From the IMG/VR virus record IMGVR_UViG_3300042907_001080, positions 217,659-281,658 of that record: a stretch of DNA of 64,000 bases, one strand, 5' to 3'. Positions 46,472 to 60,445 of the stretch are shown here, in pieces. Made by a program: the position numbers and the translations under genes. The notes beneath the pieces were generated by a model that had not been told where the DNA came from, searched no databases, and saw nothing but the letters and a program-made list of their open reading frames with translations. How positions within the stretch are numbered: position 1 is the first letter of the stretch; every line of letters begins with the position of its first letter.

Positions 46472-47077
46472 TTACATTGTGGGTCCGTTTCCGTTCTTAA
46501 ACCCTATGCTACCGCCTTCTGCTTCGATGTTCTTTATAACATCTTCAAACAAGATAGGAGCAAAGTCCGGAGTCTGCTCTACACAGACGCAATGATAACG
46601 CACATCGTTCTCATCGCTGTATAATACTTCTCCAGTCCTTGCATCTACACCACGAGCCTTACGCACACGATTTGCATGAGTGTGTCCGTGGATGTTAACA
46701 CCAAACCGGCCCAAGCTGTCGCTGTGTACAGGAATATGGCTTAAGATCATTCCGTTCATAACATGGTAGGCACGTAATTCACGAAAGTATTCACGATACT
46801 CGTCATCACGGAAAATATCGTGATTGCCACGGATAAGCACCTTGTCTCCATTCAAACGAGATAAGGTTTTTAGCGCCTTGCGGTTTATAACCACATCGCC
46901 AAGATGATATACCTTGTCAGTGGGTTTTACCCGTTCGTTCCACGCCTTGACCATTGCTTCGTCCATTTCCTCAGGCGAGTCCCATGGGCGAAGTTTTGTA
47001 ACACCATCGTTACGTGTGAAGCGGCATACACCAGTGTGTCCAAAGTGCGTGTCGCTTACTAAGAATACACTTGGCAT
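46472..47077 (-). CDS. Calcineurin-like metallophosphoesterase
   Basis: SDTHFGH, HLGD, RGNHD, SHIP, HGHTH. Confidence 0.9.
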   Translation of the reverse strand: MPSVFLVSDTHFGHTGVCRFTRNDGVTKLRPWDSPEEMDEAMVKAWNERVKPTDKVYHLGDVVINRKALKTLSRLNGDKVLIRGNHDIFRDDEYREYFRELRAYHVMNGMILSHIPVHSDSLGRFGVNIHGHTHANRVRKARGVDARTGEVLYSDENDVRYHCVCVEQTPDFAPILFEDVIKNIEAEGGSIGFKNGNGPTM

Positions 47078-47088
47078 ACTGCCTCCTT

Positions 47089-47259
47089 TTAGTAAGTTTC
47101 TTTTATAATTTTAAATTCCGTTGTCGGATACTTTGCTTTAAATTCATCAGTTTTAACAAACGCATTAAATTCGGTTGCATTGAAAAACATGCGATGAAAA
47201 ACTGATTTGTGGTCCAATGTAGTTACTGTGAGGTAAATCGATTTCGCTTTGCCGGCCAT
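47089..47259 (-). CDS. Small hypothetical protein (56 aa)
   Basis: Not in track: MAGKAKSIYLTVTTLDHKSVFHRMFFNA...KETY, with SD and consensus promoter. Confidence 0.7.
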   Translation of the reverse strand: MAGKAKSIYLTVTTLDHKSVFHRMFFNATEFNAFVKTDEFKAKYPTTEFKIIKETY

Positions 47260-47286
47260 GTGATCCCTTTCACTGTTTAAGTATAT

Positions 47287-47315
47287 ATTATACTATCAAC
47301 ACAGAGATTTGTCAA
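47287..47315 (-). promoter_or_regulatory. sigma70 consensus promoter
   Basis: TTGACA-N17-TATAAT. Confidence 0.85.
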
Positions 47316-47339
47316 TCGGAATTTACCAGGTCTCCACAT

Positions 47340-47567
47340 CTAGATCATCATGTCTATTTGATTTGGTTGATTGTGTTTAGTTACAACTGCTCGACTGTCA
47401 TAGACTTCGATAATGTGGTGATAAATGTTGGTGACTTTAGAACCATTAGGGTAAGTAGTCTGTTGCCAGATTTCTTGTTTGATAAAACCACGACCCACAG
47501 TACCAGCGGGTAATACTCCTGTGAAGCTGGTATCGACTAGAGTTACTGGTCTAATAGAATTAGTCAT
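47340..47567 (-). CDS. Hypothetical protein
   Basis: 75 aa, immediately after infA. Confidence 0.6.
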   Translation of the reverse strand: MTNSIRPVTLVDTSFTGVLPAGTVGRGFIKQEIWQQTTYPNGSKVTNIYHHIIEVYDSRAVVTKHNQPNQIDMMI

Positions 47568-47570
47568 TCG

Positions 47571-47789
47571 TTACAATCTATAAGTTACACGACCTTTGGT
47601 AAGATCATATGGGCTGACTTCAATTTTAACACGATCGCCTAAGATAATTTTTATCTTGTGCTGTTTCAATTTGCCGCTGGTATAGCATACAAGTATGTTG
47701 GGCAGATTATCCACCTTGACTCTGAACATGTTGCCAGGCAACACTTCTTCAATAGCACCAGTTAATTCGATTAGATCACTTTTTGACAT
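47571..47789 (-). CDS. infA: Translation initiation factor IF-1
   Basis: [21 protein letters not shown]....[22 protein letters not shown]. Confidence 0.95.
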
Positions 47790-48237
47790 TTTTCTTTGAT
47801 TTTAGTTGAGCGTCTGCCTTGTCTATGATTTGAAAAACCTTGTTGGCTAACACTCGTTCTTTACTAAAGGCTTCCACTTCCCAAGGCAGATCATAATAGT
47901 GTCCCTTGAATTTTTTCCCCATCCACAGTCTGCTGTTGAGATTCTTTCCGTGTTTGATCTGCCCTCGAGCATACTGTTTGACATGCACCATTTCGTGTGC
48001 CAGAGCAATGATCAACCTTTCGATATCGAGAGCGGTATCTATGCTCATGCCTATCACAGTCGGCCCCAATTTAAACACACTGCCTCGCACCCCTTCTTTG
48101 ACACTCATTCCTCTATCAGGAATCACTATCAGTGAGTATCGACTATTCTGTAATTTCAGTTCATTTCGAAATACTTGTAGACAGGTTTCAACCAACATTT
48201 TGCTGGCGCTTTTCCTCGCTAACACTTGAATTTCCAT
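47776..48237 (-). CDS. HExxH zinc metallopeptidase-like protein
   Basis: [10 protein letters not shown]...PWEVEA. Confidence 0.75.
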
Positions 48238-48258
48238 AAGAGCTCCTTGTATATATCA

Positions 48259-48287
48259 ATTATACAATCTTATTTGAATGTTGTCAA
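48259..48287 (-). promoter_or_regulatory. sigma70 consensus promoter
   Basis: TTGACA-N17-TATAAT. Confidence 0.85.
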
Positions 48288-48288
48288 G

Positions 48289-48362
48289 TGGTGCTCCAAC
48301 CAAGAATCGAACTTGAAATACATCCTTACCAAGGATGCGTTATGCCATTTAACTATAGGAGC
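48289..48362 (-). tRNA. tRNA-Thr(GGT)
   Basis: Cloverleaf; anticodon arm CATCC-TTGGTAA-GGATG; CCA encoded. Confidence 0.9.
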
Positions 48363-48927
48363 ATTCTATGTCTGCTGCCAATACAAATCGATATTGGTTG
48401 CTCTGTACAATGCCCGGACGGTGCCATGTGTCACTGGGATATATGATCCAGTGGCCTTGAGTGGGAGTGATGAAATACTTGCCATCTTGTTCTGCACCGT
48501 TGGGTGCTATTTCTGTGCCGCAATAGTCTCGATCCTTGACATCGCTGGGAATGTGCAGATAGTATATTCCGCTGAACATTTTATTATTGGGATTTTTTGG
48601 ATGCCAATGATTGTGCCATAGTTTTTCTCGATTTTCGGCACTCTGAAGATTGGTCATAAAACTCCAAGCCATCATCTCTGATACTTTGACTTCACGACCT
48701 AGATACATGAACACAGAGAACATAAAACTCATTCTGTATTTCAGCCATACGGGTTCTGGTCTGGAAAAAATATTTTCTTTGGTTTGAAACTTGGGACTGT
48801 TTGTAAAATAATTGCCGTCGGCAATAATGTTCTTGATAATTTTGCAGGCCATAGCGTCATCTTCAGCAGTGATTACACTGCTAAAATTAAATTTGCGAAC
48901 AAGCTCTGTTTGATCTACTACCTGCAT
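48349..48927 (-). CDS. Putative 2OG-Fe(II) oxygenase
   Basis: WHNH..FSGIYYL..GTE..IYPS..WH..RFVLA. Confidence 0.7.
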   Translation of the reverse strand: MQVVDQTELVRKFNFSSVITAEDDAMACKIIKNIIADGNYFTNSPKFQTKENIFSRPEPVWLKYRMSFMFSVFMYLGREVKVSEMMAWSFMTNLQSAENREKLWHNHWHPKNPNNKMFSGIYYLHIPSDVKDRDYCGTEIAPNGAEQDGKYFITPTQGHWIIYPSDTWHRPGIVQSNQYRFVLAADIECSYS

Positions 48928-48935
48928 GGTATCCT

Positions 48936-49009
48936 TGGAGCGGGATGAGAGAATCGAACTCTCGACCGAAGATTGGAAATCTGCTGTTTTGCCATTAAAC
49001 TAATCCCGC
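48936..49009 (-). tRNA. tRNA-Gly(TCC)
   Basis: GCGGGAT acceptor; loop TTTCCAA; TCCA end. Confidence 0.9.
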
Positions 49010-49034
49010 ATTGTCTTTACTTATCAACTAACTT

Positions 49035-49111
49035 TGGTCGGAGTACAAGGATTCGAACCTTGGACCCCCTGGTCCCAAACCAGGTGCGCTACCAGACTGC
49101 GCCACACTCCG
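49035..49111 (-). tRNA. tRNA-Pro(TGG)
   Basis: CGGAGTG acceptor; loop TTTGGGA; ACCA. Confidence 0.95.
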
Positions 49112-49114
49112 AAT

Positions 49115-49342
49115 TTATTCTACTTTTTTAAGATATTCTCGACCTATCTTGCCTTCTTGGACATCTAATAGAGCACTCACCGGAGAGTTGATTTGAGTAG
49201 TCAGCCCTGCTGTTTTGTGTCTACGAGACAATTCTCTGGCTCTTACTGTAGCGATTAGCACAAGATCAAATCTGTTGCCTCCCGCTTGTTCTACACATTG
49301 TTGTGTATCTACGGTAGGTCCACGACTATCAGATAATTTCAT
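49115..49342 (-). CDS. rpoZ: RNA polymerase omega subunit-like protein
   Basis: GNRFDLVLIATVRAREL...PVSALLDVQEGKI. Confidence 0.8.
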   Translation of the reverse strand: MKLSDSRGPTVDTQQCVEQAGGNRFDLVLIATVRARELSRRHKTAGLTTQINSPVSALLDVQEGKIGREYLKKVE

Positions 49343-49362
49343 TTTTTGCCTTTGTAAAAAAA

Positions 49363-49436
49363 TGGTTGCGGGACCTGGAATCGAACCAGGATCTAGAGCT
49401 TATGAGACTCTTGAGTTACCGTTTCTCTATCCCGCG
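49363..49436 (-). tRNA. tRNA-Met(CAT), initiator-like
   Basis: CGCGGG 5' end with C1:A72 mismatch; loop CTCATAA; AACCA end. Confidence 0.88.
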
Positions 49437-49440
49437 ATAA

Positions 49441-49577
49441 ACTTTATAGAGGCTCTCTGTTGGAATCGAACCAAACTGTTTAACTCCGTATCTTCCTGGC
49501 ACTTTCGGTGGTTAGTCGACTTAGCACCTAACTCGTGTGATCCAGTGTAGTTAAACTTCAAAGAGCTTTTATAAAGT
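49441..49577 (-). ncRNA. Structured RNA with T-arm but no CCA (tRNA-mimic-like)
   Basis: Closing stem TTTATAAAAGCTCTTTG/CAGAGAGCCTCTATAAA, T arm TTGG-TTCGATT-CCAA, inner stem GTTTAACT/AGTTAAAC. Confidence 0.55.
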
Positions 49578-49781
49578 GTCTAGCTACCTACACCACATAG
49601 GCCCTAGACTGAGCTGTTACTCTGTCCACTAATTTTTTCATCTGGACGGGTTTCGTTCCCGCCCCTAGGTAGTTTTCAGTATCCCCCAACAGGGGCTGTA
49701 AGGTCAGGTCCTAGTGTACCCCCTGGTCTATCGTTACAGGGACGGATTGTTTACTAACGGAAACAATCAAACCGGGGTCTG
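49578..49781 (-). ncRNA. Multi-hairpin structured non-coding segment
   Basis: GATTGTTT/AAACAATC, CTAGG/CCTAG, CCCC/GGGG, GCGGG/CCCGT and GTCTAG/CTAGAC stems; no ORF. Confidence 0.5.
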
Positions 49782-50357
49782 TTAGATCAAGCCTTCTGCC
49801 TGTAGTGTTGCTACTACATCGTCTGCCAGAGGAATCTCTGTGCGGATGTTCAACTCAAGCACTTCATCGTTGAGCTGTTGTTTTTGCTTCTTTAGGTTAA
49901 GCACTTCTGCTTTGGCCTGTGCAATTTGTTCTTTGCTGAGAACGCTGGTGCTCACAGTATCACTATAGCCGTAAAGACTGCGACGAGTGTTTTCGCCCTT
50001 GTCGTTCTTGATCTTTTCCAGCTTGCCTTTAATCACTTCCAAAGAAGTAATCTCTGTGGCTTTAGCCAGTTCTTCTAGCTGACCGATGCGCTTGTCAATG
50101 AACGCTGCCTTGGCTAATGCTGTGTTAATACCACTGGCTGCGTTGGCTGTTCCAATCAATGCACGGATGTTGTACATAGCCATGGTTAACTTTTGTCTGC
50201 GACCATCGTTGGTAACCAATTCAGAATTGGCCTTGGTGATAGCAGCTTCTACGTCTTGAAACTCATTGAGTTCAATAGTGAAATCTACTTTGATACTTTT
50301 GATGGTATCATTGATGCTGTTCTGCACAGCATTTGCTTTTCTCAGTGTGATATTCAT
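49782..50357 (-). CDS. Coiled-coil hypothetical protein
   Basis: MNITLRKAN..; heptad-rich; AAGGA SD. Confidence 0.8.
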   Translation of the reverse strand: MNITLRKANAVQNSINDTIKSIKVDFTIELNEFQDVEAAITKANSELVTNDGRRQKLTMAMYNIRALIGTANAASGINTALAKAAFIDKRIGQLEELAKATEITSLEVIKGKLEKIKNDKGENTRRSLYGYSDTVSTSVLSKEQIAQAKAEVLNLKKQKQQLNDEVLELNIRTEIPLADDVVATLQAEGLI

Positions 50358-50648
50358 TTTTCTTCCTTTTTCAAACAACAATGACGGGTCCATGAAAGGT
50401 CAAGTAATAGACCGGACAATAGACAATGAAGATTTGTATTCTTCGTTGACAATGTGCAATATACAATACACAGAGGTCTATATATTTCCGATTAACAAAT
50501 GACATTCTATTAGGAATCGGATCACATAAACACGTTCCAATTTCAAGTTGGATTGTAAGTTTGGAGTAAGCATGAAGCTCACGCCTTTGTGTCTATTCTC
50601 GTCTACCCTTCACTTCACCGGTTGAAACATTTCTGTTCCAACAAAACT

Positions 50649-50677
50649 ATTATAACATTCTTTTAAGTGTGTGTCAA
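50649..50677 (-). promoter_or_regulatory. sigma70 consensus promoter followed by ~280-nt leader
   Basis: TTGACA-N17-TATAAT. Confidence 0.85.
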
Positions 50678-50684
50678 CATGTTT

Positions 50685-50758
50685 TGGTGCCCCTTGACAG
50701 AATCGAACTGCCAATTGATGATTACAAATCAACTGTTATACCATTTAACTAAAAGGGC
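50685..50758 (-). tRNA. tRNA-Thr(TGT)
   Basis: Loop TTTGTAA; ACCA. Confidence 0.9.
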
Positions 50759-50774
50759 CTACTACTACTTATCT

Positions 50775-50849
50775 TGGTGGAGGATGGGAGGATCGAACTC
50801 CCGACTGAAGCTTGCAAAGCTACCGTGTTCCCAGCTATACCAATCCCCC
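50775..50849 (-). tRNA. tRNA-Ala(TGC)
   Basis: G3:U70 pair; loop TTTGCAA; ACCA. Confidence 0.9.
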
Positions 50850-50851
50850 GA

Positions 50852-51067
50852 TTAATCCCTAGTTGATGCTGTGCCAGTGGGATTCTTAGTGTATCCACCT
50901 GGACCAGCAGGTCTCTTTTCTCTCTTGGGCTGAACAGCTGCACATAGCTCAGCATCGATCATTGCACGTTTCCATGCACCTCGCTTGTGCGGATCTAAAA
51001 CTCCACTCAGTGCTAGACTTGCTTTAGTCATTGAACTCATTCTATAATTTGGACCTGGTTTCATCAT
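50852..51067 (-). CDS. Small basic hypothetical protein
   Basis: 71 aa, AAAGGA SD, lies between RNA genes. Confidence 0.65.
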   Translation of the reverse strand: MMKPGPNYRMSSMTKASLALSGVLDPHKRGAWKRAMIDAELCAAVQPKREKRPAGPGGYTKNPTGTASTRD

Positions 51068-51085
51068 TTTTCCTTTTTTAAAATC

Positions 51086-51285
51086 TGGTTGCTCTGCATC
51101 CCCCGGCGGTAATTATATCGCATCAGGCACCGGGAACCCCCAATACCATCACACACGACCTCCACCCGCTCCCCGACAGGGACCGTTCTCGCATTGCTAG
51201 CGGCCTTTCGGTTCGAAGACTACCACCCGTAGCTGTCACGCTACTTCTCATCGTGTGGGTCACACTATCCGGAGACACCCGGAAC
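51086..51285 (-). ncRNA. ~200-nt GC-rich structured RNA ending in ACCA
   Basis: 5' GTGTCTCCGG pairs with 3' CCGGGGGATGC; internal CACACGAT/GTCGTGTG, GTAGC/GCTAC and TCCC/GGGA stems; 3' end AACCA. Confidence 0.6.
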
Positions 51286-51289
51286 GTTC

Positions 51290-51377
51290 TGGCGGAGCAT
51301 GTAGGAATCGAACCTACTCACCCATTGCTGAATGACAGATTAGCAATCTGTTGCCTTAACCGGTCGGCCAATGCTCC
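51290..51377 (-). tRNA. tRNA-Ser(GCT)
   Basis: Long variable arm; loop TTGCTAA; GCCA. Confidence 0.92.
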
Positions 51378-51385
51378 GTATTACT

Positions 51386-51461
51386 TGGTGGGTCGTGACA
51401 GTCTCGAACTGCCGACATTCTGCGTGTAAGGCAGACGCTCTACCAACTGAGCTAACGACCC
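51386..51461 (-). tRNA. tRNA-Val(TAC)
   Basis: Loop CTTACAC; ACCA. Confidence 0.95.
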
Positions 51462-51465
51462 TGAC

Positions 51466-51630
51466 CATTAAAAAATAACATTACACCTTATAGGATGAGA
51501 CAAATTTCTGAGTGGAGTTCGATTCTCCTCATAAGCCATTGTCCACGGTTATGTCAGAGGAGTAAGATGGCCCTATTCCTCATGAGATTGTGCGTCCACA
51601 AACGATACCCGCTAATGCTATTTTTTAATG
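51466..51630. ncRNA. Structured element closed by an 18-bp AU-rich inverted repeat
   Basis: CATTAAAAAATAACATTA ... TAATGCTATTTTTTAATG; internal GGAG-TTCGATT-CTCC T-loop hairpin on + strand. Confidence 0.5.
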
Positions 51631-51711
51631 GTGCCCTAGGACGGACTCGAACCGTCACGCTTGCGCACTGGCTTCTAAGACCAGCGTGTCTACCAATTCC
51701 ACCACCAGGGC
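51629..51711 (-). tRNA. tRNA-Leu(TAG)
   Basis: Loop CTTAGAA; variable arm; ACCA. Confidence 0.93.
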
Positions 51712-51766
51712 AAAAAATTTACATTTAATTTTTAATGAACGTTTAACTAATTTCTCAGTATGTTAT

Positions 51767-51795
51767 ATTGTAACATCGTTGTTGCATACTGTCAA
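51767..51795 (-). promoter_or_regulatory. Internal sigma70 promoter in tRNA array
   Basis: TTGACA-N17-TACAAT. Confidence 0.75.
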
Positions 51796-51803
51796 CCTTT
51801 ATC

Positions 51804-51878
51804 TGGCACCGCCTACAGGAATCGAACCCATATTCAAGAGGTAGAAGCTCTTTGTATTATCCATTATACTAAAGCGGT
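51804..51878 (-). tRNA. tRNA-Arg(TCT)
   Basis: AAGAG-CTTCTAC-CTCTT; GCCA. Confidence 0.88.
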
Positions 51879-51879
51879 A

Positions 51880-51963
51880 TGGTGCGAGAAACGGGACTCG
51901 AACCCGTATGCCTTGCGGCGGCAGATTTTAAGTCTGCTGTGTATACCATTCCACCACTCTCGC
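51880..51963 (-). tRNA. tRNA-Leu(TAA)
   Basis: GCAGA-CTTAAAA-TCTGC; variable arm; ACCA. Confidence 0.93.
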
Positions 51964-51971
51964 ATTTATAT

Positions 51972-52047
51972 TGGTGCTACCTCTAGGAATCGAACCTAGT
52001 TCAACGGTTCTTCAGACCGCCGCTATGACCACATCAGCTAAAGTAGC
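51972..52047 (-). tRNA. tRNA-Phe(GAA)
   Basis: GCGGT-CTGAAGA-ACCGT; ACCA. Confidence 0.88.
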
Positions 52048-52049
52048 AT

Positions 52050-52141
52050 TGGTGCCTCCGCCGGGAGTCGAACCCAGATGAACCAATTATCTGTTGCTTA
52101 CGGGATATAAATCCGCCGTTTTACCATTAAACTACAGAGGC
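52050..52141 (-). tRNA. tRNA-Ile(TAT) with abnormally long variable region
   Basis: GCGGA-TTTATAT-CCCGT arm followed by a ~22-nt extra segment; normal acceptor, D and T arms; 92 nt. Confidence 0.7.
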
Positions 52142-52191
52142 AAAAGAAAAACTTTACAGCATCAACTATGTTAAACGAGTAAAGCCATGTT

Positions 52192-52265
52192 TGGGGTGAA
52201 AGCGGGAATCGAACCCTGCCTTACTGTTTCACAGACAGCCGTGCAGCCATTACACTACTAACACC
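52192..52265 (-). tRNA. tRNA-His(GTG)
   Basis: G-1:C73; GCTGT-CTGTGAA-ACAGT. Confidence 0.88.
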
Positions 52266-52271
52266 ATTGTT

Positions 52272-52346
52272 TGGCCGGTCCGGAGAGATTCGAACTCCCG
52301 ACAGCTGGTTTCGAAGACCAGAACTCTTCCACTGAGCTACGGACCG
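52272..52346 (-). tRNA. tRNA-Arg(TCG)
   Basis: CTGGT-CTTCGAA-ACCAG; GCCA. Confidence 0.9.
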
Positions 52347-52352
52347 ATTGAT

Positions 52353-52426
52353 TGGCAGAGGGTAAAGGAATCGAACCTTTAATGACGGAATCAAAATCCG
52401 TAGTTATACCATTTAACTAACCCCCA
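52353..52426 (-). tRNA. tRNA-Gln(TTG)
   Basis: ACGGA-TTTTGAT-TCCGT; GCCA. Confidence 0.9.
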
Positions 52427-52432
52427 ACAATT

Positions 52433-52508
52433 TGGTGGTAATAGTTGGACTCGAACCAACGATAGGCTGCGTATGAAGCAACTGCATTAGCCACTATGCT
52501 ATATTACC
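52433..52508 (-). tRNA. tRNA-Met(CAT) elongator (Ile2 not excluded)
   Basis: GTTGC-TTCATAC-GCAGC; ACCA. Confidence 0.85.
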
Positions 52509-52600
52509 ATATAGAAACACACTTGGAACTTTCTCATTGAACGGATGGTGTTCTGTCCTTACTATCTAGACTACGTCTAGAATCAAGTATGTTTTTATAT
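52509..52600. ncRNA. Structured element closed by a 17-bp AU-rich stem
   Basis: ATATAGAAACACACTTG ... CAAGTATGTTTTTATAT; internal TCTAGAC/GTCTAGA and GGATGG/CTGTCC hairpins. Confidence 0.5.
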
Positions 52601-52673
52601 GGTAGGGGCACAGAGAATCGAACTCTGATTTACTGGTTAAAAGCCAGTTACTTTACCATTAAGTTATACCCCC
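52600..52673 (-). tRNA. tRNA-Lys(TTT)
   Basis: ACTGG-CTTTTAA-CCAGT; ACCA. Confidence 0.92.
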
Positions 52674-52800
52674 AACTGTTTATGACATTTGTCACTGTCC
52701 ATAACAGGATCTCCTATTTTAAATTTTTGTCGATAAAATATATCAATACTACCAGCATGAGTAAAACTGCAACCGCCCCATTTTGTTTTCTCCTTATAAG

Positions 52801-52874
52801 TGGTGCCCAGAACAAGAATCGAACTTGTAATAATCGCTTATCAAGCGACCGTTATACCATTTAACTATCCGGGC
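52801..52874 (-). tRNA. tRNA-Ile(GAT)
   Basis: GTCGC-TTGATAA-GCGAT; ACCA. Confidence 0.9.
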
Positions 52875-52878
52875 AATT

Positions 52879-52968
52879 TGGCGGAAGTAGTAGGATTCGA
52901 ACCCACGGCCCCTTTCGGAACTTCAGTTTTCAAGACTGCTGCCTTAAACCATGCTCAGCCATACTTCC
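52879..52968 (-). tRNA. tRNA-Ser(TGA)
   Basis: Loop CTTGAAA; long variable arm; GCCA. Confidence 0.92.
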
Positions 52969-52973
52969 ATAAT

Positions 52974-53054
52974 TGGTACCCCGGGCGGGAGTTGAACCCG
53001 CATTTAAATTTCTCTTTTTGAGAGAGACGACTTTGCCAATTTGTCTACCGGGGC
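52974..53054 (-). tRNA. tRNA-Leu(CAA), reduced variable arm
   Basis: TCTCT-CTCAAAA-AGAGA; variable region AATTTAAAT; ACCA. Confidence 0.8.
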
Positions 53055-53060
53055 GTTGTT

Positions 53061-53137
53061 TGGAATAGCGGGTGGGATTCGAACCCACGAACAACAGTTT
53101 TGCAGACTGCGCCATTAGGCCTCTCTGGCACCGCTAT
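53061..53137 (-). tRNA. tRNA-Cys(GCA)
   Basis: GCAGT-CTGCAAA-ACTGT; U73; CCA. Confidence 0.9.
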
Positions 53138-53153
53138 ATAGAATAAATATCGA

Positions 53154-54098
53154 ATGCTTATAAAATTACAATTTTCTCACGACAGTTGCTTGACTATCAA
53201 ATTGTTTGATAATTCTGCAGCTCGCAAGTGGTTTTCTTTTTATTCACTTAAAAATAACAATAAATCAGTTCCAATAAATTTCAATGATAATTATAATCAC
53301 ATAAACTATTTTAAGAAACGTAAAAATCGATATGAAAACCAGATTGCTGAAGAATGGGAAAAAATACATCGGAGTCTTAACAATCTCAAAGATCTGGGAT
53401 ACATTTCAAATATAGAATTGCCAGCGATGTTTGATTATCAACAAAGTCGACTTAATCTACTGCACAGATTTTTTACCACAAATGCTATATGGGATCATAA
53501 ATTCAATGATAAACGTATTCATAAGCCAAATCCCATTGACAGTAATTTTTACACTACGGTAGAAAATCGTCAACATTTTAAAAACTGCATTGAACAGATC
53601 AATGCATCAGTGCATTTTCTCGAAAGTTTTACAGACCCGGAGAACAGAAAAATATTAGATACTCTGCCGTTGAATTCTATAATTATTATATCACAGAATA
53701 ATATAGCTAATCACGACACCTGGTGCCAATTTTCTCATGATGAACAACAAGAAAATTACAAATATCTGCAATATCTTGAATGCAATCAACCATTGGTATT
53801 ATTAGATAACTCTATCACTGGTAAAAGCTATCTACAAAATTTTCTAGAGAACGATGATCCTACCAACGAAGACTGCACAGGACGAGAAGGTTCGCACGGT
53901 AATCTCATTATTGATACCAACGATAATAGACAAAAAATATATTCCAGCGACAAGTTCCAAGCCTGGGCAGATCACTACGGGTTAAAAAACATACCATATG
54001 AATTTGCTATCGGTTCTGTTATAGACTGTGACTACAGTGAAATGCACAAATTTCAGAACTGTTCTCAAACTAGACTAACATATCATTCAACACTCTAA
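53154..54098 (+). CDS. AT-rich hypothetical protein inserted antisense in tRNA array
   Basis: 314 aa; TAAATA-N4-ATG; LNLLHRFF..INASVH.LE motifs. Confidence 0.8.
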   Translation: MLIKLQFSHDSCLTIKLFDNSAARKWFSFYSLKNNNKSVPINFNDNYNHINYFKKRKNRYENQIAEEWEKIHRSLNNLKDLGYISNIELPAMFDYQQSRLNLLHRFFTTNAIWDHKFNDKRIHKPNPIDSNFYTTVENRQHFKNCIEQINASVHFLESFTDPENRKILDTLPLNSIIIISQNNIANHDTWCQFSHDEQQENYKYLQYLECNQPLVLLDNSITGKSYLQNFLENDDPTNEDCTGREGSHGNLIIDTNDNRQKIYSSDKFQAWADHYGLKNIPYEFAIGSVIDCDYSEMHKFQNCSQTRLTYHSTL

Positions 54099-54101
54099 TA
54101 C

Positions 54102-54175
54102 TGGAGCGGGATAGGAGAATCGAACTCCTAACTAAACCTTGGCAAGGTTTCGTTTGACCATTAAACTAATCCCGC
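54102..54175 (-). tRNA. tRNA-Gly(GCC)
   Basis: AAACC-TTGCCAA-GGTTT; TCCA. Confidence 0.92.
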
Positions 54176-54180
54176 ATATA

Positions 54181-54255
54181 TGGAAGACCGTAGGGGAGTC
54201 GAACCCCTCTTACCAGGATGAAAACCTAGTGTCCTAACCGATAGACGAACGGTCC
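54181..54255 (-). tRNA. tRNA-Glu(TTC)
   Basis: CTAGG-TTTTCAT-CCTGG; CCA. Confidence 0.88.
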
Positions 54256-54263
54256 ATAAAACT

Positions 54264-54337
54264 TGGCGTACCTCCAGGGACTCGAACCCCGACGAACAGT
54301 TTTGGAGACTGTGATGCTGCCATTACATTAGAGATAC
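54264..54337 (-). tRNA. tRNA-Trp(CCA)
   Basis: ACAGT-CTCCAAA-ACTGT; GCCA. Confidence 0.92.
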
Positions 54338-54342
54338 ATTAT

Positions 54343-54421
54343 TGGCTCCGAGTAAGAGGATCGAACTCTTCTAACCAGTGATTAACAGTCACGCCCATGC
54401 ACCTTGCTCGGGTTTCTCGGA
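54343..54421 (-). tRNA. tRNA-Asn(GTT)
   Basis: TCCGAG acceptor; loop CTGTTAA; GCCA; atypical D arm. Confidence 0.85.
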
Positions 54422-54428
54422 ATAAAAT

Positions 54429-54503
54429 TGGCGGTCTGTGGGGGAATCGAACCCCCGTAAGCGGATAGACAATCCGCAGTAATAACCTCTATACGAACAG
54501 ACC
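54429..54503 (-). tRNA. tRNA-Asp(GTC)
   Basis: GCGGA-TTGTCTA-TCCGC; GCCA. Confidence 0.9.
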
Positions 54504-54508
54504 AAATT

Positions 54509-54592
54509 TGGTGGAGACGGCTGGAGTCGAACCAACAGTGCCGAAGCGGCGGATTTACAGTCCACTGGGGATACCAATTTTCCTACATCTCC
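54509..54592 (-). tRNA. tRNA-Tyr(GTA)
   Basis: GTGGA-CTGTAAA-TCCGC; variable arm; ACCA. Confidence 0.92.
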
Positions 54593-54785
54593 AAAACACA
54601 CTCTTGCGAATGTGTGTATTAAAGAGCACAGTCTGCGACATCTCAGTCCAGGCCAGTTCTATGCTCTTTAATACGAACTAATTTTTCCTCCCACACAAGG
54701 GATTCCATCCTAGTCGCCGCCCGTTCGTCCATGTTTAAAGTGCAGACTGGGACCTCGTTTCCCTTAACACTTTTGCTATTAGTTT
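54593..54785 (-). ncRNA. Structured non-coding segment before first tRNA
   Basis: 16-bp stem GTATTAAAGAGCATAG/CTGTGCTCTTTAATAC; AAAGTG/CACTTT, GGGA/TCCC and AACTAAT/ATTAGTT stems. Confidence 0.45.
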
Positions 54786-54952
54786 ACACTATACATTGGC
54801 GCTTGAGCCAATGCTTCGCGATAAATCCTAGCTCTTTCAAACTTATCTTGAATAAGTTTCTGAAGCTGCTCTTGAGTCATTTCTCCAAAAGCAGTTTCAT
54901 AAGCCTGTTCAACGATTCGTTCGTTTAATTTTTCGTAATCTATCTGTTCCAT
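54779..54952 (-). CDS. Small hypothetical protein (57 aa), first gene after attenuator
   Basis: Not in track: MEQIDYEKLNERIVEQAYETAFGEMTQEQLQKLIQDKFERARIYREALAQAPMYSVN; AAAGGA SD. Confidence 0.7.
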   Translation of the reverse strand: MEQIDYEKLNERIVEQAYETAFGEMTQEQLQKLIQDKFERARIYREALAQAPMYSVN

Positions 54953-54964
54953 TTTTTCCTTTAT

Positions 54965-55000
54965 AAAAACAAAAACCCCAGGGTGTTTAATCCTGGGGTC
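54965..55000 (-). terminator. Intrinsic terminator of the tRNA-operon attenuator
   Basis: GACCCCAGG-ATTAAACAC-CCTGGGGTT followed by TTTGTTTTT. Confidence 0.9.
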
Positions 55001-55053
55001 CTTTGAAGTTTAAGTGTATTTTATGTTTACACTAACATCTCCACGGACCCCGG
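54992..55053 (-). promoter_or_regulatory. Antiterminator hairpin overlapping leader ORF end and terminator 5' arm
   Basis: GGGGTCC/GGACCCC, GGAG/CTTC and TAGTGTA/TACACTT pairings around an AACATAAAA loop. Confidence 0.75.
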
Positions 55054-55170
55054 CTCTAGCTCTGGTGTGCGATCATATGATAGACTATTAATCGATAACC
55101 AGCAAGAGGCCATTACGCCTACCTGTTTGGGTATTGAATTAAAATGACTAAAAGATGATCTGAGTTTCAT
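55027..55170 (-). CDS. Leader peptide containing all 20 amino acids
   Basis: Not in track: MKLRSSFSHFNSIPKQVGVMASCWLSINSLSYDRTPELEPGSVEMLV*, between promoter and terminator. Confidence 0.7.
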   Translation of the reverse strand: MKLRSSFSHFNSIPKQVGVMASCWLSINSLSYDRTPELEPGSVEMLV

Positions 55171-55226
55171 GTTCTTTCTCTTTGTTCCTTGATTTACACG
55201 ACAGCATTTCTGCTGTCTATGTATTA

Positions 55227-55255
55227 ATTATACAGTTATTTAGTCTTGCTGTCAA
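55227..55255 (-). promoter_or_regulatory. Perfect sigma70 promoter of tRNA operon (proximal)
   Basis: TTGACA-N17-TATAAT, TAAATA in spacer. Confidence 0.9.
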
Positions 55256-55312
55256 CCTCTATTTGCACATTTGGCAAAATAAATTTTGACGCCTTCCTAA
55301 CCAACTGTATGT

Positions 55313-55341
55313 ATTGTAATGTCTTTTTATTTATATGTCAA
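55313..55341 (-). promoter_or_regulatory. Tandem upstream promoter (distal)
   Basis: TTGACA-N17-TACAAT, TATAAATA in spacer. Confidence 0.75.
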
Positions 55342-55380
55342 TAGAAATATAGCCACTTTATGTGGCTTTTTTGCCACAGT

Positions 55381-55647
55381 TTATTCTGTGTCAGAGATGC
55401 CAGTCTCACTTGAGATCAACAGGTGCTTGCCAATCTCAAACAGGCCTATACTGCCAGGTAGGTCCAAGGCACACACATGTATCTGTGTGATACCATCTTC
55501 GTCTATGCTGGCTGCTACAAACTCTGCAATCTCTCCACTCTGAACCATCAACCGCATGGCGTCGATGACATCAAGGAGGTCCTGTTTGCGTTTGGCCTCA
55601 GCTTCTAGTTTTCCACCCAATACAACTACTTTGGAATCTGTTTTCAT
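55381..55647 (-). CDS. Hypothetical protein
   Basis: 88 aa, AAGGA SD. Confidence 0.7.
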   Translation of the reverse strand: MKTDSKVVVLGGKLEAEAKRKQDLLDVIDAMRLMVQSGEIAEFVAASIDEDGITQIHVCALDLPGSIGLFEIGKHLLISSETGISDTE

Positions 55648-55654
55648 ATCGTCC

Positions 55655-56230
55655 TTATTCTAAAATATGATCAGCTATGCCTAGGTCCAACACTTCCTGT
55701 GCTGTGAGATAGACATCTGATGGTGGCAGTAATTTTTTCTTGATCACCGATGGAGCAAGCCCAGTGGCTTCTTTAAGAATATTGATCATCTTATCATTGC
55801 AGATATCATTTTCCTTCATGGTGGCTTTCAGATCATGATATTTGTTTTCCATGTTTTCGGAAAATTGGTGACACATGAAACTGGTGTTTTTGGCAGCATA
55901 TCTTTGTCCTTGATCTGCGGCAGCAAAAATTAAAAAAGCAGCACTCATCACTGAGCCTATGCCAACACAACGTACAATATGAGGGCTGGCTCTCATGATA
56001 TCTATCAGCCCAAAGGCCTGGTAGAGATCACCGCCTGTAGAGTTGATATACAAAGTAAGGATTTTCTCTTTGCTGACATCGAGATTTTCGCAGATCAGCC
56101 ACTTTACTGCAGGACCAATACTGTCTTCATCAATTTCGCCGTTGAGGAAATATGTGTTGTTTTCCAACAGTTTGAGATCAATCCGATCCTCGGCATTAAA
56201 ATCTTCCAGTTTTCTCACTTTTTGCTCCAT
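55655..56230 (-). CDS. clpP: ClpP-like serine protease
   Basis: LYINSTGG, SVMSAA (Ser), FMCHQ (His), DVYLTAQE..LGI.D (Asp). Confidence 0.88.
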   Translation of the reverse strand: MEQKVRKLEDFNAEDRIDLKLLENNTYFLNGEIDEDSIGPAVKWLICENLDVSKEKILTLYINSTGGDLYQAFGLIDIMRASPHIVRCVGIGSVMSAAFLIFAAADQGQRYAAKNTSFMCHQFSENMENKYHDLKATMKENDICNDKMINILKEATGLAPSVIKKKLLPPSDVYLTAQEVLDLGIADHILE

Positions 56231-56275
56231 GATATACTCTTACTTATGCTTTATAATATTATACTTTAATTACAA

Positions 56276-56659
56276 TCACAAACCAAAGAATATCCACCAA
56301 ATCAGCATGATATAGGTGAGTTGGTGTGCCAATTGATCAGCACCAAACCATACCCAAAAAGCACGATCTTGTGGTGTCAGCTTGGCGTGAGCATTGATCT
56401 TGGTTTTGGCCCAATCTATGTGATAGTGCAGTAGAAAATCAAAAAATGCAGCTACCAGCCCGATGATTGGGTGCAACCATACAAATGCCAATAGTGTACC
56501 AGCACTGTGCCAAAGACTGTGATATATGCCATGCCTGGCACCGTAGATGCCTTTTTCATGAATCATGCGGGGAGTCTGCAAGACAAAGTCTGCTAGAAAA
56601 TGTTTGATCTGCAGAACTACAAATACCAGCAGTAGTGTGTCTAGGTCTGAGAGTGCCAT
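56276..56659 (-). CDS. DUF3307-like membrane protein
   Basis: KHFLADFVLQ, HSLWH, HYHIDW.K, DQLAH. Confidence 0.8.
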   Translation of the reverse strand: MALSDLDTLLLVFVVLQIKHFLADFVLQTPRMIHEKGIYGARHGIYHSLWHSAGTLLAFVWLHPIIGLVAAFFDFLLHYHIDWAKTKINAHAKLTPQDRAFWVWFGADQLAHQLTYIMLIWWIFFGL

Positions 56660-56910
56660 TTACCTTCGCTCCAGTGTCTTGAATCGTAGATGTTAAAATC
56701 CACATTGATTCCAAGCAGTCCTAGACACAGTCGCATACCGCTATGGCTTTGTCTTGTGGTAATATCAACGGCAATATCAACAACGTCTGCACTGAAGTAT
56801 ACCTGCAGTTCCCAGAACTTGAAAGGCATTGGCAATGATCCGACCCAACATCGAATATTACGAAATCGATTTACTCCAGGTAATCGGATATTGAAATTAA
56901 AATTAATCAT
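56641..56910 (-). CDS. Hypothetical protein
   Basis: 89 aa in coupled operon. Confidence 0.65.
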   Translation of the reverse strand: MINFNFNIRLPGVNRFRNIRCWVGSLPMPFKFWELQVYFSADVVDIAVDITTRQSHSGMRLCLGLLGINVDFNIYDSRHWSEGKWHSQT

Positions 56911-57092
56911 TCCGGCAATGATCTAAATCTGCTCAAAAAACTTTCCTCGTAACAACTGTATTCACGATTGTTATCTTCGGGTGCATTTTCTTTGATATAA
57001 TGAACCCAAGTGTGATCTTCAATTTCGATTACATGAATCACTCGAAATATATGATCCCCGTTACTCACCCATTTAGATCCTTGTTTAATCAT
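56907..57092 (-). CDS. Hypothetical protein
   Basis: 61 aa; YSCYEESFLSRF. Confidence 0.65.
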   Translation of the reverse strand: MIKQGSKWVSNGDHIFRVIHVIEIEDHTWVHYIKENAPEDNNREYSCYEESFLSRFRSLPE

Positions 57093-59553: not shown

Positions 59554-59879
59554 TTCCAAGTACGGTGATCTTCAGCCACCCATTCTACTCCGTCATACTC
59601 ACCAATGTGCCACAACACATCGCCGGGTATTTCTACTATCTTGAGTTTGGCATGTCCGCCGCTAGCAGCAGAACCGAGTTCTTTGACTACCTTGACCAGA
59701 TAGGGATCGTCTCTAGCCACATCACGATCATACCAACCTGGATCTGTAATACCGGCCAACTGCTTGTATTGTTCACGAGCAAGATCACTAAGGCCGAATC
59801 CGCCATAGCAGTCGTTGATTACAACATGTCGAACACCAGTCTTTAGATCTTGCATGAACTTCTGCGACTCTGTAGTCAT
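59550..59879 (-). CDS. Hypothetical phage protein
   Basis: VVINDCYGGFGLS..RDDPYLV.VV..EYDG.EWV.E.H. Confidence 0.75.
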   Translation of the reverse strand: MTTESQKFMQDLKTGVRHVVINDCYGGFGLSDLAREQYKQLAGITDPGWYDRDVARDDPYLVKVVKELGSAASGGHAKLKIVEIPGDVLWHIGEYDGVEWVAEDHRTWK

Positions 59880-60445
59880 TATCTATCTTTCTTTTTCTTC
59901 TTCTTTTTCTTTTCTACGGAAAACGGAATATCGTTCAACATACGGTGTTGATCAATTGCTTCCTGTAGTGCGATCTCTACAAGCTCGTTGAATGTGATAT
60001 CACGATCGTGTGCAATCTTCATATACTCCAACAATTCTGCATCATCGAAGTTCACTTCAATTTGCACACGAGTGTCGTAGTCTTCACCTTCTCGAATCGC
60101 TAGCCCTTTCTGGAAGAAATCATCGTCTACATCCAAATCGACGTAGTTAACATCGTCCCAAGCCTGATTTTCTAACACACCCCGATCTTTTGATTCGCGA
60201 TCGTGGGCAGATTTAAATTCCGGATTGATCAAACGATATGCACGATTGTGAACATAGTCGTGTGCCTGCACTTCGTAGACAGTCTGTGTCTTGGTGTCAA
60301 AGACAATGCTGAAACTATGACCTTCATGGTCACCATTCCACGAGTCTAGTGTGTAGGCATTGTCACCATAACACTTCCAGCAGTAGTTACTGCCTTCAGT
60401 GATGCGATAGTCTACCAGTTCCATCCATTCTTTAAGCGTGATCAT
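59879..60445 (-). CDS. Hypothetical protein, possible C-terminal ribbon-helix-helix
   Basis: 188 aa; AHDRDITFNELVEIAL; poly-Lys tail. Confidence 0.7.
   Translation of the reverse strand: MITLKEWMELVDYRITEGSNYCWKCYGDNAYTLDSWNGDHEGHSFSIVFDTKTQTVYEVQAHDYVHNRAYRLINPEFKSAHDRESKDRGVLENQAWDDVNYVDLDVDDDFFQKGLAIREGEDYDTRVQIEVNFDDAELLEYMKIAHDRDITFNELVEIALQEAIDQHRMLNDIPFSVEKKKKKKKKDR

Follow-up and report, generated by a model that had tools for sequence, protein, structure and literature searches.

The 64,000 nucleotides (nt) of DNA analyzed here, which we refer to as the window, cover positions 217,659 to 281,658 of the IMG/VR virus record IMGVR_UViG_3300042907_001080 and represent the final 64 kb of one contig of 281,658 bp with a G+C content of 40%. 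The source virus is an uncultured jumbo phage, and the sequencing runs that matched the contig were lake-water metagenomes. The minus strand of the window contains an array of 27 tRNA genes (54592-48289), which serve 19 amino acids, with no tRNA for Asn. Upstream of the array is the element studied here, in which a short open reading frame (ORF), hereafter the leader, is located between two promoters and an intrinsic terminator. The original prediction was that the leader peptide senses the supply of all aminoacyl-tRNAs and that the leader controls a complete phage tRNA operon by transcription attenuation. Searches of the public phage collection INPHARED for near and distant DNA relatives of the window gave zero matches, as did a protein search with a 57-amino-acid ORF located between the terminator and the array, and the ClpP-like protease and a 609-amino-acid ORF gave remote matches only. 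The phage belongs to a group without any known cultured relative in this collection.

The individual parts of the element were recovered as originally described. The tandem promoters were present, with a perfect consensus match for the proximal one, and so was the ORF of 47 codons, with the translation as quoted (for coordinates, see Table 1). A recount of the peptide gave the same numbers as before, in that 32 distinct sense codons are used and codon 37 completes the set of 20 amino acids. Eight amino acids are present as single copies, and there are no codon runs for any amino acid. The promoters and the terminator of the leader resemble the E. coli-like consensus, and transcription is predicted to start near position 55220 on the minus strand. 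In 76 of 77 non-redundant relatives, the 200 nt preceding the leader contained a promoter that matched at least 11 of the 12 consensus positions.

Complete amino acid sets are rare in windows of this size, as had been anticipated. Of all 37-codon windows without a stop in the 281,658-bp genome, 0.16% contained all 20 amino acids, as did 2.5% of the ATG-initiated ORFs of 40 to 60 amino acids in this genome (n = 361), among which only the leader reached the complete set by codon 37. The chance expectation is about 0.6 such ORFs per genome, so that the single genome is not significant by itself and the significance has to come from comparative data.

Homologues were collected by using the neighbouring ClpP-like protease as a seed, which yielded 57 related IMG/VR loci with identities of 100% to 45%, and by means of an exact 32-mer of the terminator, which is common to 13 additional IMG/VR stretches, partly from the same contigs. 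The leader region was alignable in about 20 related loci, in which the frame of the ORF was kept and insertions and deletions were in frame, and the related loci contained 18 distinct leader homologues. A profile built from these 18 peptides matched 452 proteins (clustered at 90%) in a search of 5.8 billion, and 154 clusters among the representatives at 50% identity. The leader family is present on more than 100 phage contigs. Leader lengths ranged from 35 to 54 codons, nearly all profile matches being 41 to 54 residues long, and the ratio of nonsynonymous to synonymous substitution rates (dN/dS) was 0.45 over codons 2 to 36 in 17 independent close pairs.

The expectation that a short ORF with full amino acid coverage is conserved in relatives despite sequence drift was borne out. 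All 20 amino acids were present in each of the 18 distinct leaders of the related loci, where the set was complete by codon 34 to 39, and in 102 of 144 representatives at 50% identity (71%), with 19 amino acids in another 37, 18 in 4 and 17 in 1. The corresponding fractions under the null models were 19.6% ± 3.0 for shuffled alignment columns (with a maximum of 29.9% in 2000 shuffles), 11.1% for sequences emitted by the hidden Markov model (HMM) of the family and 4.0% for random draws from the pooled family composition. The complete set was also found in 86 of 92 leaders identified through the terminator motif alone, and it was retained in peptides that had drifted to less than 35% identity. 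Among the ORFs that were beyond reach of the family HMM but preceded the same RNA switch, 8 of 14 contained all 20 amino acids, including one of 35 codons. The residues missing from leaders were mostly Cys, Val or Phe.

Single-copy residues such as C, H, F, Y and K varied widely in their position within the peptide, with strongly under-dispersed copy numbers. In a relatedness-aware test of compensation, based on 97 independent ungapped close pairs with a median identity of 84%, a single-copy residue was replaced in the partner 142 times, and in 130 of these 142 cases the same amino acid occurred elsewhere in the partner. The null expectation was 58.8 ± 5.5 of the 142, with a maximum of 85 in 20,000 simulations. 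As judged from these comparisons, the all-20 amino acid content is kept by selection.

The peptide itself could not be assigned to any family by searches of Pfam and PHROG. AlphaFold2, run on a 108-sequence alignment, gave a predicted local distance difference test score of 62.9 and a predicted template modeling score of 0.13, with no secondary structure; for a 47-residue peptide this is a weak model, with which a function is compatible. A helix-turn-helix or other peptide fold was unsupported by the domain searches and by AlphaFold2. Family-wide, NNU codons were favoured over NNC codons (97% for Tyr and 91% each for His, Asp and Phe, compared with 62% to 72% in the genome), and Glu was encoded by GAG over GAA in 90% of cases, compared with 17% in the genome. 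This bias is partly caused by RNA constraints (CCAGAG, GGAG). The NNU codons are wobble-read, which fits a sensitive sensor, other causes being possible.

A mini version of the leader was also noted in loci L007 (4860-5060), L010 (4860-5050) and L155, in which the ORF of 35 codons still contains all 20 amino acids, P1 (the basal helix of the RNA structure described below) contains G-U wobbles, and about 7 nt separate the end of the -10 hexamer from the ATG, so that the transcript appears to be leaderless. These loci have an additional strong promoter immediately ahead of tRNA-Tyr. In locus L036 (7134-7544), the DNA of the leader module has 90% identity to positions 54960-55380 of the window, whereas the ClpP-like protease is only 65% identical as a protein, and the module sits 2.5 kb further from the protease gene than in the window. 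This suggests that the leader-tRNA module is exchanged between phages.

The end of the leader overlaps an RNA structure that competes with the terminator. In the window, the minimum free energy (MFE) fold of this region is an antiterminator hairpin of -25.1 kcal/mol (z = -5.1) with three tiers: GGGGUCC at 55051-55045 (codons 40-42) pairs with GGACCCC at 55001-54995 in P1, 55043-55039 with 55008-55004 (UGGAG/CUUCA) in P2, and 55033-55028 with 55018-55013 (AGUGUA/UACACU) in P3. The stem of the terminator is ACCCCAGG/CCTGGGGT, its loop has 9 nt and a U tract follows (-18.2 kcal/mol); because of the loop length, the terminator was passed over by a simple terminator scan, which accepts loops of 3 to 8 nt. 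Since the 5' arm of the terminator shares ACCCC with the 3' arm of P1, the two structures are mutually exclusive. The strength of the terminator, the pairing of the ORF end with its 5' arm and the formation of each conformation were all as originally proposed. The stop codon (55029-55027) is located within the 5' strand and loop of P3, and is 27 nt upstream of the terminator stem, which places a terminating ribosome too far away to block the terminator directly.

The same arrangement was observed in the relatives. P1 was formed in all 77 non-redundant relatives (median z = -5.2), the median energies being -24.0 kcal/mol for the antiterminator and -14.2 kcal/mol for the terminator. The P1 arm begins 21 to 25 nt ahead of the stop codon, which in 63 of the 77 relatives was part of either the 5' stem or the loop of P3. 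The anticipated covariation was found, and it was independent of the reading frame: the closing pair of P1 was G-C in 55 cases, A-U in 43 and G-U in 4, with a single A-C mismatch, there were 34 different complementary stems for P3 and 24 for P2, and locus L028 contained a double compensatory change in the antiterminator helix. Furthermore, the 5' arm of P1 was read in two frames, as Pro-Gly-Ser or Arg-Val-Arg (47 and 43 cases), and is thus conserved as RNA and not as protein. The terminator motif was present on more than 120 viral contig stretches in a DNA motif scan. RNAalifold recovered the terminator only partly from a whole-leader MAFFT alignment, in which the arms were misplaced, and pair counting on this alignment muddled P1; anchor-based and per-sequence analyses were used instead.

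In the full-length leader of the window, the antiterminator was kept in both the MFE and the centroid fold, and the untranslated RNA folds into the antiterminator in the window as well as in the 77 relatives. By this folding, the default without translation should be read-through, and termination should require a ribosome at the end of the ORF. In four lake metatranscriptomes, the summed contig depth was 36 to 122 over the leader and 0 to 6 right after the terminator; contigs terminated at 54960 and 54974, and weaker contigs crossed the site. The drop in depth agrees with an abundant terminated leader RNA and some read-through.

The residues that are missing from leaders were compared with the tRNAs that are missing from the arrays. 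For arrays with 20 or more tRNAs (41 leaders), residue and tRNA were both present in 734 cases and both absent in 7, whereas the residue was present without the tRNA in 78 cases and the tRNA without the residue in 1 (Fisher p = 7.5e-7); for arrays with 15 or more (63 leaders), the respective numbers were 1040, 11, 208 and 1 (Fisher p = 3.6e-8). Because the lineages are non-independent and some arrays are perhaps incompletely covered, the evidence is at most as strong as these p-values suggest. In the larger set, a missing leader residue corresponded to a missing tRNA in 11 of 12 cases. The tRNA-Cys was absent in 4 of 5 instances in which a Cys-less leader was associated with an array of 25 to 28 tRNAs, one leader without F, H and K preceded an array of 20 tRNAs without Phe, His and Lys tRNAs, and two leaders without F and K preceded arrays that lacked both tRNAs. 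A 46-residue peptide without Lys, Phe and His is not explicable by proteome composition. One Cys-less leader (P0089) was without contig DNA, and the contigs with L205 and L209 were too short for the array to be judged.

We consider it likely that the element is a ribosome-mediated transcription attenuator, the leader peptide of which would be built to sample every amino acid, and the proposal of a sensor for all tRNAs passed the sequence-level tests described above. That the ORF is translated, that the position of the ribosome decides on termination and what the physiological triggers are, we infer. According to this model, transcription would initiate at either of the two strong sigma70-type promoters, and the 47-codon ORF would be translated as the RNA polymerase advances. 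The last 7 to 8 codons of the ORF would represent the 5' strand of the P1-P2-P3 hairpin of about 57 nt. When this strand is unoccupied, the hairpin would form first and block the terminator, so that the polymerase would continue through the 57-amino-acid ORF and a structured RNA into the first tRNA cluster. A ribosome that has reached the stop codon would unwind or cover P3, P2 and part of P1; as it would hold the 5' strands of these helices and could not reach the terminator, GGACCCC would be freed to pair with CCUGGGG, and transcription would stop at the U tract. A ribosome stalled at any hungry codon among the first 37 or so would preserve the antiterminator and raise the expression of the tRNA genes. 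Such hunger could arise from amino acid starvation, from loss of host tRNAs during infection or from defences that cleave tRNAs.

With somewhat less assurance, we also favour the view that leader and array form a closed supply-demand loop for tRNAs, in which a leader of 35 to 50 codons, held by selection to include one codon or more for every amino acid with a phage-encoded tRNA, would sense shortage of any aminoacyl-tRNA and raise transcription of the array, and in which the content of the leader would co-evolve with that of the array. Under such a loop, a tRNA gene lost from the array would be matched by a residue lost from the leader.

Several observations weigh against an attenuator of this kind or limit its reach. 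The array contains internal promoters and is thus divided into several transcription units, for which the attenuator is not the sole control, and loci L007 and L010 carry a strong promoter between the attenuator and the tRNA-Tyr gene. The claim of control over a complete tRNA operon is overstated, given the strong internal promoters, the plus-strand ORF that splits the array, the coverage of only 19 amino acids, and the protein ORF and structured RNA that precede the first tRNA; in the window, direct control by the attenuator probably extends over the 57-amino-acid ORF and the structured RNA and no further than the first five tRNAs. Leaders also hold residues for which the array provides no tRNA (78 of 812 in the arrays of at least 20 tRNAs), such as Asn in the window. 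The codons AGA, ATA, CTA and TTA were correctly described as having phage tRNAs; these are not special, as the phage tRNAs can read 81% of the leader codons and 81% of all genome codons, and the notion that leader codons are specially matched to the phage tRNAs was rejected. The residue that completes the set, most often Glu (GAG), is located only 9 to 11 nt before the P1 arm, and a ribosome stalled at this codon may already contact the arm. The full set lies upstream of the antiterminator arm in 64 of 71 leaders, compared with 17.4 ± 3.5 for random order, a test that is partly trivial because RNA constraints fix the tail. The co-absence of residues and tRNAs was determined for related sequences, of which L212-L214 are one lineage, so that the p-values overstate independence and the result of 11 of 12 rests on few lineages. 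Finally, the metatranscriptome data are at the level of contigs, with relatives summed.

The leader is also more conserved than codon counting would demand. W24 and D33-R34 are invariant or nearly so, the peptide motif AKQxGxMPxYW...NDRTPE persists across the family, and GAUCG shows no variation in 79 of 79 sequences. A pure codon counter would have no need for such conservation, which points to an added constraint on the leader, be it RNA structure, a nascent-chain effect or a trans-acting peptide. A hairpin inside the ORF encloses the invariant UGG and GAUCG, and 90% of its cells were paired across the 79 sequences, but its covariation was not above that of shuffles in this set, and the hairpin was rejected as a proven pause element.

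This surplus conservation would fit an ordinary stand-alone gene for a small protein, equipped with a promoter and a terminator, in which case the peptide would act in trans, for example in tRNA metabolism or host defence, and the 3' hairpin would serve mRNA stability or translation termination instead of regulation. The dN/dS value below 1 and the abundance of the leader RNA as a discrete species in the metatranscriptomes are in line with such a gene, and many small phage genes have a promoter and terminator of their own. We nevertheless find this explanation improbable, as there is no protein-level reason for the position-independent retention of each amino acid, nor for an all-20 property that outlasts the loss of sequence similarity, and neither a confident AlphaFold2 fold nor a Pfam or PHROG family was obtained. 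In addition, conservation of the tail is at the RNA level, across two reading frames, the composition of the leader follows the tRNA repertoire, and a conserved covarying helix that competes with a terminator is the signature of a switch. It is less improbable, although still unlikely, that the element has a dual function, in which attenuation is combined with a terminated leader RNA of about 250 nt, its peptide, or both, acting in trans. The peptide motif and the nucleotide blocks UGG, GAUCG and ACACCAGAG exceed the needs of codon sensing, the terminated RNA appears to be abundant, and there is a precedent in the trp attenuator of Sinorhizobium, from which a small RNA (rnTrpL) and a peptide (peTrpL) are derived that act in trans (PMC7968998). 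No target was predicted for the phage element, and the surplus conservation may equally stem from the hairpin inside the ORF or from nascent-chain effects.

Two further explanations concern the switch itself. The polarity could be reversed, in that good translation suppresses the terminator and turns the tRNA genes on whereas poor translation leaves them off. The end of the ORF is near the terminator, and coupling-type attenuators such as that of pyrBI are well established, but we judge this to be very improbable here: a terminating ribosome, 27 nt from the terminator stem, would have the terminator past its reach and would cover the 5' strand of the antiterminator instead, the naked RNA adopts the antiterminator in 77 of 77 relatives, so that loss of translation predicts read-through, and the all-20 composition would be left without a role. 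That a small RNA or an untranslated leader happens to contain, between its promoter and terminator, a spurious ORF with 20 amino acids might seem conceivable for one genome, with about 0.6 such ORFs expected among its 361 short ORFs; this has a negligible probability and is refuted by the conservation of the ORF, the in-frame insertions and deletions, the retention of the complete set, the compensation and the co-variation with the tRNA repertoire.

The features of the region are listed in Table 1. The array was predicted to follow the terminator, and it is indeed located downstream on the same strand; it is, however, separated from the terminator by the 57-amino-acid ORF and a conserved non-coding stretch of 186 nt. 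No promoter-like site was present between the terminator and the first tRNA cluster of the window. A tRNA gene on the same strand was found 216 to 966 nt downstream of the element (within 1.5 kb) in 69 of the 77 relatives, 7 of the other 8 being truncated contigs, and in three loci the element was located inside the tRNA array.

Table 1. Features of the leader element and the tRNA array in the window.
Feature	Position	Strand	Basis or remark
Distal sigma70-type promoter, TTGACA-17-TACAAT, 11/12	55313-55341	-	Kept in 8-sequence alignment
Proximal sigma70-type promoter, TTGACA-17-TATAAT, 12/12	55227-55255	-	Sequence
5'-terminal hairpin of the predicted transcript	55200-55217	-	Seen in MFE and centroid folds
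Purine-rich Shine-Dalgarno-like stretch before the ATG	55171-55190	-	Similar stretches in relatives
Leader ORF, 47 codons and TAA	55027-55170	-	Sequence and family conservation
Hairpin inside the ORF (CUGGU...ACCAG, CGAUUA...UGAUCG), candidate pause hairpin	55062-55102	-	Folds
Antiterminator, three-tier hairpin P1-P2-P3	54995-55051	-	Fold, covariation
Intrinsic terminator, ACCCCAGG / 9-nt loop / CCUGGGGU and U tract	54965-54999	-	Fold
57-amino-acid ORF, first gene past the terminator	54779-54952	-	ORF track
Structured conserved non-coding stretch, 186 nt, then long hairpin, abutting tRNA-Tyr	54593-54778	-	Conservation
First tRNA cluster: Tyr, Asp, Trp, Glu, Gly	54102-54592	-	tRNA scan
ORF of 314 amino acids dividing the tRNA array	53154-54098	+	ORF track
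Remaining tRNA array, 22 genes	48289-53137	-	Internal promoters at 51795, 50677, 48287
Internal array promoters, consensus or near-consensus sigma70	51767-51795, 50649-50677, 48259-48287	-	Sequence

A homologue of the 57-amino-acid ORF followed the terminator in 30 of the 77 relatives, and no Pfam family above the cut-off and no PHROG was identified for this protein. The first 115 nt or so of the non-coding stretch were 73% to 90% identical in about 60 of 183 related loci, with the invariant blocks GGAAACGAGG, AACGGGCGG and GGAUGGA and several covarying helices, followed by a long perfect hairpin. The stretch had no match in Rfam and represents a candidate new RNA, which would be co-transcribed with the tRNAs upon read-through of the attenuator.

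Further observations were made in and around the arrays. The plus-strand ORF of 314 amino acids had no Pfam or PHROG match, and gaps of similar size were seen in the arrays of relatives. The gene for tRNA-Ile with anticodon TAT (52050-52141, minus strand) is 92 nt long and has an odd length of 84 to 95 nt in related phages, which suggests an insertion or an intron-like extra arm. The arrays of relatives adjoin genes of a tRNA-repair type (L211:17392-20201, L207:14963-18983, L212:16638-18403, L214:18265-20150) for RNA ligases, including one similar to T4 Rnl1, and for proteins with AAA_33 kinase, HD and metallophosphatase domains; these neighbours fit a conflict with host enzymes that damage tRNAs. 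Small genes similar to Rpb6/omega were located inside or just past the arrays of relatives. It was also noted that an ORF of 188 amino acids on the minus strand (59879-60445) has eight consecutive lysines at its C-terminus, and the long A tract that codes for them may be a slippery sequence.

Outside phages, the element was absent from the bacterial genomes of 185,579 species, the lone exception being a phage-like contig in a metagenome-assembled genome (MAG). A bacterial origin or prophage copies were considered and rejected, as 20 of 21 bacterial motif matches were unrelated terminators. The exception, L201 (JBBAKF010000113.1), is a contig of 6.2 kb with a G+C content of 42% that carries the element and was assigned to a Polynucleobacter MAG. 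The contig probably stems from a phage and was mis-binned, and its assignment gives a weak hint of Polynucleobacter as the host.

Large tRNA arrays similar to that in the window are found in phages such as T4, T5, KVP40 and vibriophages, in which they presumably keep translation going if the tRNAs of the host are degraded or come under attack. Such viral arrays are mostly regarded as constitutive cargo. The control by a leader peptide proposed here would add a previously undescribed regulatory layer, and a full-text literature search gave no report of phage tRNA genes controlled by a leader peptide, in agreement with the original statement that no such phage system was known. If correct, this would be the first described viral tRNA array that is regulated by translation feedback, which bears on the question of how large phages translate while host tRNAs are degraded or hit by anticodon nucleases.

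The architecture is that of an attenuator, with a leader ORF between promoter and terminator, mutually exclusive helices and an ORF that overlaps the switch. Classical leader-peptide attenuators (trpL, hisL, pheL, leuL, thrL, ilvL) govern biosynthetic genes and have one or two cognate codons arranged in runs, and their 1:2 hairpin makes the untranslated leader terminate. The phage element resembles them in its short leader ORF, intrinsic terminator and exclusive antiterminator, and, as far as its geometry tells, in the use of ribosome position as the signal. It differs in that the leader has no codon runs and contains all 20 amino acids, and in that the output is tRNAs. Three features of the trp type are thus absent, namely the codon runs, the biosynthetic output and the anti-antiterminator: no 1:2 hairpin was found in the MFE and centroid folds, both of which keep the antiterminator, and the upstream hairpin in the ORF spares the P1 arm. 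Without an anti-antiterminator, lack of translation should give read-through in the phage leader. If the proposed function is correct, it would be the first leader peptide for which evolutionary data show selection for compositional completeness and not for a run of one amino acid. Selection at the level of composition is detectable in very short ORFs that are skipped by gene callers and annotation pipelines, and a reporter of 35 to 50 codons for the shortage of any aminoacyl-tRNA would, if real, be a compact sensor for cell-free and synthetic-biology use.

T-box elements bind one specific uncharged tRNA directly, without translation, and control synthetase or biosynthesis genes. They share with the phage element the feedback from tRNA charging through the choice between terminator and antiterminator. 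A permissive Rfam search of positions 47000-57000 gave only tRNAs and two chance matches, and no T-box (RF00230).

The closest known system is the attenuator of whiB7 with its upstream ORF (uORF), which provides a mechanistic precedent outside phages (PMC10274678). Efficient translation of the whiB7 uORF leads to a rho-independent terminator, and stalling leads to an antiterminator and read-through (PMC10274678). The gene is induced by knock-down of tRNAs, tRNA synthetases and biosynthesis for 18 of 20 amino acids, and the starvation responses depend on the residues of the uORF, such that removal of the Trp or His codons abolishes the respective response (PMC10274678). A tRNA-cleaving toxin also induces whiB7 (PMC10287673), and the whiB7/wblC attenuator is present in mycobacteria and other actinobacteria (Lee, Lee & Roe 2022, as cited in PMC10287673). 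The whiB7 uORFs vary, are often several amino acids short of a complete set and are biased towards Ala (PMC10274678).

The phage element works alike but is not a member of the whiB7 system. As in whiB7, translation favours the terminator and its absence the antiterminator, which for the phage is predicted from folding and geometry. The two share no sequence or RNA homology, and one is found in a phage and the other in actinobacteria. The output also differs, in that whiB7 encodes a transcription factor, whereas the phage element precedes a tRNA array, which would create a direct loop between supply and demand. Furthermore, the phage leader is held at 19 to 20 of the 20 amino acids within 35 to 50 codons by compensatory turnover, and its gaps match the gaps in the tRNA repertoire. 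On the evidence of the sequences compared here, what is new beyond whiB7 is the maintenance of a complete amino acid set in 35 to 50 codons and its co-variation with the tRNA repertoire of the phage.

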